Below are positions 52,831 to 56,173 of a DNA stretch of 64,000 nt, piece by piece (position 1 is the stretch's first letter; each line of letters begins with the position of its first letter). Both the position numbers and the translations under genes were made by a program. A model generated the notes under the pieces. It was not told the origin of the DNA and made no database searches. It saw only the letters and a program-made list of their open reading frames with translations. The DNA lies in the NCBI GenBank assembly GCA_023515725.1, contig JALDTO010000155.1:221147-285146 (forward strand), given 5' to 3'. The stretch is from Amoeboaphelidium protococcarum X5. Taxonomy: Eukaryota; Fungi; Aphelidiomycota.

Positions 52831-55800
52831 TCACAGTTTCTTCTTCAGTTTAGGCAACTTGCTGCTAGATGCACCATCTTTCTGATCCAGAAGTAGTTGA
52901 GAATCGAGATTGAACTGATTGCGGCCATTTGTCTCATCCAAAATTGCCTTCTTACGGTCGCGCACTTCTTTAGCACGATCCTGGTCTGCTTTAGCCTTCA
53001 ATTAAACTCTTGACAGCTCTGCTAATCTATTCTACTCGGCCTGTTCTTCCTTCTCTACACACTCATATAATATCGTTACTCTCTGATATTAAGCTAAATT
53101 GCGCGTTAATCAATACCTTTCAATTCAGCAGCCAGGCGTTCATTATCTTTAGTATCTTCAGACGCCTTACCCTCTGCATCTCTGATAAATGCCGGCTTGT
53201 TAGATGGCACCTTTAACTCGTCCGCGGATACTTCAAACACGACAGCTACAAGGATCTGAGTACAATGCTCTTATTGTTAAAAGTGCAAAGTGCAAAAACG
53301 GAAACCGTTAAGGTTGACGTTGGAAGAATGCGCGAGCGATCGAGCGCGCGACGGTGATCTCGCAGAAAACAGACAAGTCAGTTGTTTCAAACAAATCCTC
53401 AATGATTTTGCATTAAACTTTTTGTATTAAATCCACTTTCAATCTCAGTCTCCATATTATCTGTCTTGTTCAAATACTACACTCATCCATGGTACCAGAG
53501 CAATTGTTTGTCTTGAAGCTAGTTGGTTTGAAGTTCCCCCAATGTGCGATGAACTTATCCAAATCACCGCCAAAGTGCTTTCTCAGACATTTCATGATCG
53601 GGCAGTATTGCTTCACGTAGAATGATTTGGCGCCAGCTGATAACCCGACGGTTGAGCCAGGATCATCCACTGCAAGAATGGCCTCCAACTTCGCCATGGC
53701 AGTCTTCGCTTTTCTCACTTTCTCTCTCCCAGGCATATCATTCACAACTTCATCCTACTGAACAGCTGTGATGGCAGGTACAACATCAGCTACGTCAGTG
53801 TCTTCTTCATCGGATTCATAGAGTTCATCATCAGAGTGAACCGCAGCTTGTTCACGTAACTATCTGGAAGAAGATTATTGAGAAGTCAGAGTAGATTTTG
53901 GCTACTTCAACTTAGCTGATTGAGTGGCAGCAATCAATCCATTCGCATAAAGCTCAAGCATCCTACGCAGCTCATTAATCTCCTCCGGAGTGGCATTAGG
54001 TGCAATTTCTTTCAACTTTGCCTCAATAAGCTGCAGCACAGTCTCTTTCTTCTGCAACTGGAGAAGTGCATCGTAAATCACTCTAGGTCCACCAACTGCA
54101 TCAACATCAGATAATCCACATAAGCTACGAACAATCTCTTGACTCACCTGCTGCAGACAAAAATTGCCTCTAGAATGGGCAGCATTCAGACTGCGAGCCA
54201 TCTATAGCTACTCACAGTAGGCTGATCTGAATTTGCTTACCACGGAAGACACGTCCAAACGTCTAGTCTTCGCTAATTCTAGCAAATAGCTAGCATCCTT
54301 CTTATACAATGCGGCATTAGCGGACGAAGCGTGTCGCGCACTCTTAGTGATGTCAATCTCTGATCCCATTCCCCAAACAGCAAGCAAATAGCCAGTCTTC
54401 CTACTAGTGTGCGTACCAAATTTACCATCGGGATTGCCGGTAGCAATCTTACAAGCTTTCTGATACTGCCTATGATAAGATACGTAAGAGATGTTGTACG
54501 CCGCATGCCCAACTTGCTTCACAGCATCCAGTGTACTCTCTTGAGGGAACAAGAATCCAGTTCTAATCCCAGAAATAAAAATCCACGTCAAAAGCGCACG
54601 AACCGGGCACAATTCGGGCACATCATAATCCGTCCAAAGAGTCAAGCACACTCTAACACGATCAGACTTGCCTTTAATGTAGAAAGCAAGGGAAGATATA
54701 CTGCCATCACTTTGAAAGGTCGCAAGATCCTTGTTGAGACAATTTTCCAGCCTAGGATCATGAATTTTCAAATCGGTGACTTCATCATTGCGCAGAAATA
54801 GCTTGATACTAACGATAATCATCGTCCACATCATGAATGACTTCGCATCATTTTTCGAGATGAAATACTCGCGGAGACGTAGTAATTCCCAAGGTGTGAG
54901 CGGCTAGCTGCCTTCGGACACGTAGCTGCATCCATCGCGGGAGTTCAATCTCTACATGTTAGTCATGAGGGAAGAATTCTTTGGATCTCCACCCAGCCAA
55001 ATACGAGGAGCCATCGGATGGAACCGACAGCCAGATCTATCACCACGCTCAGAACGTTGGATGCACTCTTCGCAGATATCTCTGTACTCCCCCCTCTAAT
55101 TACGACTATCATGCAGCACAGAGACAGCCGATAACAACTGGTCAACATTCTGTGGCATATTCCAACCACCCTAGCACTTGATATCGTGCCCATAGACACA
55201 TTTCACAGCGTTGCCATTCTCGTCTTTTAGCAAAGAACCCTTCTCATTACGCTTGAACTTGATAAACAAAATGATGCTCTTGGCGTTCATTGACGGTGTG
55301 TACTGCGGGGGGTTAGGAAGCAGCATTAAACTCGAGCTGTAGTCACCAATTAGCGCAAAAAAGTACCGCAATCCTCTGTAATGCTTCTAGTAGGCTTACA
55401 TACTATTCACAGCCAAAGGCCTACCGCCAGTGAGTGGCACAGATACGTCGGATCGAGTCAACCTCAGCAGCTTCAACGTCTCTCCAATGCCTTCATCCAG
55501 CTTATACTTGTACGCCGCTTCAATGCGATACACATGGCTGTTCTCCGACTTCTTGCGTCTCTTCACCTTCTTCGCCAACTGCTCATCATCCAGACCATCA
55601 TCAGAGTCGTAATCGTCGTCGTCATCTTCATCTTCATTCTCCAGCTACCTATTGAAAGCAGCACTGACTTGAGCAGAACTTTGTGAAGTGATATCAGCAG
55701 TTTGATTCATGCTAACAACACTTGTTTCAGCCTCGCACCCAGCCAGACCAGAACTTGAGGAGGCGGATACGCCGACACTACTGCCAACACCAGCACACTC

Positions 55801-56173
55801 ATCAACGGCTGGGATGCCAGTACTACTGTTGGAGGTGGTGATACCACCTCCAGATGGCTACGAGTCACTCTACACTGCTCTAGAACGCTTCCTGCCAGAC
55901 ATGCGAGACGGTCGAGATTGTAACAAAGCGAGTTCGGTGCGTTTCTCCGGGTGCAAGGTGCAAAACACTACCGGTGCAAAAGAAAACAAGCGTTTTATTT
56001 GTTTTAAAAGAGTCAGATACAATGAGATATCGAAATCTTATTCAACTCTATTTCAGACAACTTCATTTACATTTTAGAGGCTTTTTGGCATCTTGGGCTT
56101 TACCAATTTGCTATGGCTTCTACTCTTACGACTCGGCCAAGTTGCTCTGCTCACTTGATGGTCCGCAGCCCAT
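52831..56173 (-). CDS. Small N-acylated coiled-coil protein (stathmin-like, 151 aa); intron 1 carries the Crypton
   Basis: Exons 56173-56071, 53245-53117 and 53054-52831 splice in frame: MGCGPSSEQ...PLK/SVVFEVSADELK...LAAELK/EKEEQAEQNRLAELSRV...KKKL*. Confidence 0.75.
53261..56024 (-). mobile_element. Crypton-type tyrosine-recombinase DNA transposon
   Basis: 7-bp direct repeat TACAATG at 53261-53267 and 56018-56024, no TIRs, single YR gene. Removing it restores a 68-nt GT-AG host intron. Confidence 0.9.
53470..55902 (-). CDS. Tyrosine recombinase (810 aa, intronless)
   Basis: Catalytic set LFLRNDE (R), KGKSD (K), ELCPV, GTHTSRK (HxxR), SARH (H), AALY (Y). Five track ORFs join in one table-6 frame. 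Confidence 0.92.

Follow-up and report, generated by a model that had tools for sequence, protein, structure and literature searches.

The stretch of the aphelid Amoeboaphelidium protococcarum X5 genome analysed here (contig JALDTO010000155.1, 64,000 nt from position 221,147 to 285,146, or G000:C155:221147-285146, hereafter the window) comes from an assembly of 23.6 Mb in 346 contigs and carries, within an intron of a host gene, a 2757-nt unit whose sole gene content is a 2433-nt open reading frame (ORF) for a tyrosine recombinase (YR) of 810 amino acids. With a probability of roughly 85%, we regard this unit as a copy of a Crypton-type DNA transposon that is very young and probably still mobile. 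The element and its junctions are laid out as follows, in positions of the window.

53260 to 53265, plus strand: left target half G-TAC-AA (consensus R-T-A-H, then AA), from the logo of 23 left junctions; the homeolog has GTATGA here
53266 to 56022, no strand assigned: mobile unit, defined as TGCTCTTATTG...GAGTCAGATACAA, 2757 nt; same length in all 19 complete copies, with flanks diverging outside the ends
53283 to 53296, plus strand: two tandem GTGCAAA subterminal repeats of the left end (starts 53283 and 53290)
53470 to 55902, minus strand: recombinase ORF, 810 codons closed by TGA; 16 in-frame TAA/TAG are taken as Gln
54211 to 54903, minus strand: YR catalytic domain, with R421, K462, H548, R551, H574 and Y583 (numbering of the 860-codon frame)
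55951 to 55980, plus strand: three GTGCAA[G/A] subterminal repeats of the right end (starts 55951, 55958 and 55974), in the same orientation as the left ones
56018 to 56022, plus strand: the element's own terminal TACAA motif, found at 24 of 25 right ends (TACAG in copy L019)
56023 to 56030, plus strand: right target half TGAG-A-TAT (N4-D-T-A-Y), from the right-junction logo; the homeolog has TGAAATAT here

A DNA search of the genome recovered 19 complete copies, together with L020, which lacks the last 28 nt, and L021, which is cut by a contig end; about ten further contig ends stop within the element. An earlier reading of this stretch, made from the sequence alone (the sequence-only reading), had set the window copy at 53261-56024; all 19 complete copies measure exactly 2757 nt. 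Fourteen of them, that of the window included, are identical, while A2581C is common to the other five, one of which (L019) also has its last base changed from A to G. A protein search of the genome returned 21 loci at 100% identity over the catalytic part. The limits of the element can equally be written as 53264-56020, given an ambiguity of 2 nt (AA), and the shortened L020 (G000:C192:415422-418161) breaks off as ...AAAACAAGCGTT|GTAT..., where an internal sequence resembles the normal end and is followed by a DTAY half-site. A repeat search of the element found no terminal inverted pair and no long terminal direct repeats; the subterminal word GTGCAAA is present in four exact copies versus 0.33 expected, in a single orientation throughout. 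In the window, long frames are closed by TGA only, and frames of 250-1300 codons fill it once TAA and TAG are read as Gln. Long open frames are avoided by the insertion sites of the copies: a frame spanning such a site has a median length of about 690 nt, as read by eye from the 19 per-copy maxima, versus 1602 nt at random window positions.

Empty sites define the insertion to the base. The flanks of the window copy match the homeologous contig C232 at 91% and 87% identity, and the site is empty there, reading ...GGATCTGGG TATGA TGAAA TATCA..., with an alignment that becomes gapless once 2757 nt are taken out. The empty site that the sequence-only reading had proposed to look for in a homeolog exists, and its view of the insertion as recent is upheld. 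Four other copies (L002, L007, L008 and L026) are inserted in an intron-like repeat of about 150 nt, the empty paralogs of which read ...GGATAAAATACAATATCTTACTGATACTAAC...; they reveal simple insertion without duplication at TAAAA^TACAATAT and, 5 bases further, at TACAA^TATCTTAC. Contig C169, which shares 100% identity over 1495 nt with the right flank of L007, has no insertion there. From these empty sites it follows that the target itself supplies the five variable bases adjoining the element on its right. Two candidate explanations for the variable right-hand bases, a carried 'coupling sequence' as in Tn916 and a TA target-site duplication as in Tc1/mariner transposons or internal eliminated sequences, were ruled out because the bases belong to the target.

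Comparison of 23 left and 25 right element junctions as a logo yields the target rule. The left flank ends in A-R-T-A-H-A-A across all 23 junctions, with R at -6, T at -5, A at -4 and A at both -2 and -1 in every case (23/23 each), and with -3, the middle base of the 5-mer, divided among A (11 junctions), C (7) and T (5). The element end reads ...GATACAA in all right junctions but one (TACAG), and it is followed by W at +5 (23/25), T at +6 (25/25), A at +7 (24/25) and Y at +8 (25/25), with T mildly enriched at +1 (12/25). The target is thus a palindrome-like RTAH-AANNNN-DTAY, into which the element is inserted without duplication. This revises one claim of the sequence-only reading, which had recognized two TACAATG 7-mers flanking the recombinase and interpreted them as a direct repeat and 7-bp overlap. 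Both 7-mers are present (53261-53267 and 56018-56024), but the comparison it had suggested with other copies finds TACAATG at only 7 of the 23 left junctions and 1 of the 25 right ones; the other copies set TACAA against TAHAA, often with a mismatched middle base, and there is a further requirement for DTAY downstream. The 7-mer of the window copy is the 5-nt TACAA plus two target bases that chance to match the first bases of the element, and it arose because the target happened to read TAC-AATG, the TG being the target's.

The recombinase gene is intact, as the sequence-only reading had stated. Its minus-strand frame (56052-53473) is open for 860 codons when TAA and TAG are read as Gln, and the first ATG, at 55902, gives the protein of 810 amino acids. 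In an alignment of 61 recombinase relatives (A1), K79 is invariant and R38, H165, R168, H191 and Y200 are each at least 90% conserved; the alignment also conserves a Cys/His-rich N-terminal segment and a C-terminal C..H..C..C motif, both of which the window protein possesses. An alignment-based AlphaFold model of the catalytic domain reached a predicted local distance difference test (pLDDT) score of 97.6, compared with an unusable 36 for the single-sequence model, and Foldseek matched the former to XerH, Cre, XerA, lambda Int, Tn1549 Int and IntI. A HMMER search with residues 384-614 retrieved 700 relatives, 413 of them at E <= 1e-10 and the best at 44% identity. Those with a named source, annotated as 'hypothetical proteins', come from the chytrids Zopfochytrium, Blyttiomyces, Physocladia and Quaeritorhiza and from the oomycete Aphanomyces; many others are located on contigs of environmental origin, 2.3-3.8 kb long. 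Sequence searches of the stop-free ORF pieces against Pfam, PHROGs and PDB (for Pfam, pieces of at least 47 amino acids covering about two thirds of the ORF) gave nothing usable, with phrog_1 integrase at E 0.022 only, and the A1 profile had no match in PDB; given the Pfam failure, recognition of the recombinase depends on the family alignment and the fold. Among the 61 relatives, Pfam NDC10_II, a Crypton-derived domain, was touched by nine (best E 1e-4) and Phage_integrase by five, all below the curated cut-offs, and an Atlas NDC10_II cluster scores 0.96; both are indirect pointers to a kinship with Crypton YRs.

Other recombinase sequences occur in the same genome. A second relative, present in a single copy at C264:1094545-1095240, is 40% identical and contains one in-frame TAA, and degraded recombinase fragments are found at C135:20951 and C179:505022. 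Unrelated to the element is a tyrosine-recombinase-like stretch at G000:C249:842461-842766 that passes Pfam Phage_integrase (PF00589) with 30.1 bits and has three TAG inside.

Cryptons are YR-only DNA transposons without terminal inverted repeats (TIRs), the 4-6-bp terminal repeats of which are taken as recombination substrates (PMC3212892). The window element encodes a YR with the catalytic R-(K)-H-R-(H/W)-Y residues, as seen in the alignment, the model and the fold, and has no reverse transcriptase, RNase H or methyltransferase, which sets it apart from DIRS, Ngaro and PAT elements; in particular, no reverse transcriptase family was matched in the Pfam scans of the stop-free pieces or of the 61 relatives. 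Its only repeats are the short subterminal GTGCAAA ones, without TIRs or long terminal direct repeats, and the boundary repeat it shares with the target (TACAA versus TAHAA at 23/23 left junctions, perfect in 7) falls within the 4-6 bp of Cryptons. With no TIRs, long terminal repeats or reverse transcriptase and with a XerH/Cre-like catalytic fold, the element fits the Crypton class, and its description in the sequence-only reading as a complete Crypton-type YR transposon without TIRs is upheld.

As for the subfamily, GCR1_C (PF12550), the domain by which CryptonF is recognized, had no match at E <= 1 on the C-terminal stop-free pieces (residues 618-716 and 767-860 of the 860-codon frame) and none at E <= 0.1 in the 61 full-length relatives, in agreement with the sequence-only reading. 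DUF3504 (PF12012), which would point to CryptonA or Glomhopper, was matched neither in the element pieces nor in the relatives. Starships are tens to hundreds of kb long, carry cargo and have a DUF3435 recombinase, the Captain YR, at one end; here, DUF3435 had no match, and the element is 2.76 kb long and without cargo. On these sequence grounds (no GCR1_C, no DUF3504, best relatives 44% identical), a separate Crypton subfamily is plausible.

The sole Cryptons seen moving, with activity first observed in 2023, are those of Chlamydomonas, where CryptonF-1_cRei ends in CACCG, targets CAYCG, excises cleanly, still gains copies and causes rearrangements that have target sites at their breakpoints (PMC9977147). 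The window element resembles this YR-only DNA transposon of Chlamydomonas reinhardtii (López-Cortegano et al. 2023, PMC9977147) in its 5-nt terminal motif, which matches the target save for a degenerate middle position (CACCG/CAYCG there, TACAA/TAHAA here), in its clean empty sites and many identical copies, and in the flanks rearranged at element ends. It differs in the absence of GCR1_C, in a different, AT-rich motif with an extra DTAY half-site 6 nt downstream, and in that its activity is deduced here, not witnessed in mutation-accumulation lines. CryptonF carries GCR1_C, whereas CryptonS of oomycetes and a diatom is without it and mostly ends in TATGG (Kojima & Jurka 2011, PMC3212892). The absence of GCR1_C, an own conserved C-terminal region and termini of 5-6 bp starting with TA are all features of CryptonS with which our element is compatible, and it has relatives in an oomycete (Aphanomyces), so that it may or may not belong to this group; unlike CryptonS, it resides in an aphelid, and its closest relatives are those of chytrids. 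A search of the literature available to us found no paper describing Cryptons in aphelids.

Several points weigh against a young and mobile Crypton. Activity is deduced from the identity of the copies, and neither a circle junction nor a tandem copy was present in the assembly or in Joint Genome Institute (JGI) metagenome contigs, in which the circle-junction and empty-site sequence patterns had no match. Pfam Phage_integrase stayed below significance on the stop-free pieces of the protein. Moreover, ATAC and TTAT arms are separated by 7 nt at the junction of the element itself but by 6 nt in the targets, which makes the site geometry provisional. As for competing explanations, an intact ORF lying sense within a host transcription unit is what a domesticated, immobile host gene would look like, but the 21 copies at 100% identity with identical ends in unrelated sites, along with the empty homeologous and paralogous sites, already refute this idea, to which we assign practically no chance. 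That part of the flank diversity is an assembly artefact, with contigs mis-joined through the identical 2.76-kb repeat, is a serious possibility, albeit one that we put somewhat below even odds: at least 10 contig ends stop inside the element, and several copies have flanks that do not match each other (L009-left instead pairs with L022-right and L009-right with L011-left, and the left flank of L007 is foreign). Nevertheless, genuine rearrangements brought about by Cryptons, with their breakpoints at target sites, have been documented in Chlamydomonas (PMC9977147). Furthermore, the window copy has both flanks collinear with the homeolog, and each junction sequence is valid even with wrong pairings.

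We know of no study of Crypton recombination chemistry, and in a burst of identical copies with base-exact empty sites, nature provides clean data on both the target rule RTAH-AANNNN-DTAY and the crossover position. The -3 base at the left junction is always the target's and that at the right end always the element's C (16 non-C left junctions, 25 right ends), while the element's TGCT(C) always stands at the left junction and target bases always at the right; the reverse polarity was seen in 0 of 21 or more copies. In L019, the right end reads TACAG and the left TAAAA, and the homeolog has G at that place. These junction bases, together with L019, place the visible crossover between -3 and -1; by the same evidence, the AA found on the right side at -2/-1 comes from the target and is required. 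Given the fixed junction polarity, the exchange point of one strand only is visible in the products. Exchange of two strands 6-8 nt apart, with mismatches resolved by replication, should produce both polarities, of which only one was seen. We infer that either one strand is exchanged, with replication or resolution afterwards, or repair is strictly one-sided; the sequences fit both equally.

In our main reading, the element would excise as a circle with the junction ...GATAC-AATGCT... (the predicted circle or tandem junction being ...GAGTCAGATAC-AATGCTCTTATTG...), and the recombinase would pair this junction with a look-alike target. Crossover would take place directly 3' of the H/C position, between -3 and -1, where only the adjoining AA (often AAT) would have to match; at every junction the element's AATGCT stays left and the target's own AANNNN right. 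A further, tentative proposal, which we rate as rather improbable, is that the Crypton integrates, and perhaps excises, by exchange of only one strand pair at RTAH^AA, with the junction resolved by replication. If true, one-strand exchange would explain why all copies have the same polarity, why 2-3 nt of homology are enough, how the 7-nt spacing of the element pairs with 6-nt targets, and how copies are gained despite clean excision. A classical Goodwin-type two-strand exchange across the 5-bp TACAA/TAHAA core, with the middle-base heteroduplex corrected later, agrees with the published Crypton model and the CACCG/CAYCG case (PMC9977147, PMC3212892), and the 5-mer is the sole shared block. 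Still, all 16 non-C left junctions keep the target base on the left and 25/25 right ends keep the element's C, although replication of a heteroduplex should yield both arrangements, so that fully one-sided repair would be needed; in L019, moreover, the ends differ in the last base of the 5-mer. We hold this alternative to be possible, if on the unlikely side. Lambda-type recombination through a 7-bp TACAATG overlap, serving as the terminal direct repeat of the element, would account for the two copies of the 7-mer at the window element, yet it is very hard to credit and already refuted by the other copies: 16 of the 23 left junctions read TAAAATG or TATAATG, TG follows the right-end TACAA in the window copy only, and mismatched middle bases never change sides.

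Among bacterial systems, the integrases of CTnDOT/NBU1 and Tn916/Tn1549 tolerate heterology, while the integron IntI and the CTX phage with XerC use one-strand exchange. As in these systems, a match of 2-3 nt by one cleavage site is seemingly enough for the aphelid element, with the rest of the presumed overlap differing, and its recombinase model matches the folds of Tn1549 Int and IntI (Foldseek). Unlike the heterology-tolerant integrases, it leaves no carried-over 'coupling sequences', the element side always being AATGCT, and it is a eukaryotic nuclear element; the analogy is one of putative mechanism only.

The host gene of the window copy has three exons encoding 151 amino acids and is arranged as follows.

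56071 to 56173, minus strand: host exon 1 (MGCGPSS..., 103 nt), 94% identical to the homeolog; ATG and GT conserved
53246 to 56070, minus strand: host intron 1, 2825 nt as it stands and 68 nt when the element is left out; GT and AG conserved in the homeolog, where the intron has 68 nt
53276 to 53282 (plus-strand coordinates), minus strand: branch-like TTTTAAC motif contributed by the end of the element; the A is 31 nt away from the end of the intron
53117 to 53245, minus strand: host exon 2, 129 nt, from the gene model and homeolog alignment
53055 to 53116, minus strand: host intron 2, 62 nt, from the gene model and homeolog alignment
52831 to 53054, minus strand: host exon 3 including the TGA stop, from the gene model and homeolog alignment

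The element lies 20 nt upstream of the intron 1 acceptor and on the same strand as the gene (model 56173-52831, minus), in accordance with the sense, intronic placement given by the sequence-only reading; likewise, taking 2757 nt out of the sequence reduces the 2825-nt intron to 68 nt, the length found in the homeolog, and exons 1 and 2 join in frame. Between the homeologs, exons are 92-94% and introns 76-85% identical, all splice sites and both intron lengths are preserved, and codon differences comprise 22 synonymous and 6 non-synonymous ones, four of the synonymous ones swapping CAG/CAA with TAG/TAA. This conservation of exons, splice sites and intron lengths means that both exons belong to one gene and not to separate genes. 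The branch-like motif that the element end had been said to supply about 30 nt from the acceptor is present, extended to TTTTAAC, but stands as a sequence observation only. The window copy offers a test case for the effect of a 2.76-kb sense insertion on a 68-nt intron, with the intact homeolog as internal control; precise excision might, as the sequence-only reading suggested, toggle the host gene. Both host homeologs are intact and 6 residues apart, and the protein starts with MGCGPSS, an N-terminus of the myristoylation/palmitoylation type, the remainder being mostly charged coiled-coil. A stathmin-like identity was not shown by Pfam scans of the host gene, which were run exon by exon and were all blank, and a Stathmin family search matched neither the host gene nor the controls.

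The repeat of about 150 nt that harbours four of the insertions (L002, L007, L008 and L026), at two sites 5 nt apart, is a hot spot for the Crypton and has an intron-like structure, with GTGAGAGTGTACTGAAACGG at its 5' end, an internal hairpin CTCAAAGGTG...CACCTTTGAG, a TACTAAC branch box and the 3' end ...TTCTTACA(G). Members of the family are L037, L040-L043, L046 and L048 (e.g. G000:C233:294171-294279), and taking the repeat out as an intron yields open frames of 1665 nt (L041), 681-891 nt (L048) and 609 nt (L037); by its sequence, it is a candidate introner family. At L036 (G000:C179:59268-59378), a repeat copy stops right after ...GGATAAAATACAA and gives way to unrelated DNA, GAAAGTATTC, which fits N4-D-TAY, with no Crypton present; the break may have been left behind when a Crypton was excised or mediated a rearrangement.

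Some copies have flanks that do not belong together. L007 (G000:C233:286511-289273) has a foreign left flank, and its right flank corresponds to the 5-kb contig C169 (L046), where the empty site lies inside an intact intron-like repeat; the pair points either to an allele with an empty site combined with a rearrangement or to a chimeric assembly. Flanks are also permuted among L009, L011, L022, L053 and L055-L057. The mismatched pairs could be Crypton-mediated rearrangements or assembly chimeras: L009-right and L011-left together make up one repeat family (...GATGAATATAA^...CCCCGGCCTTCGGGCC...), and the natural right neighbour of L009-left resembles L022-right.

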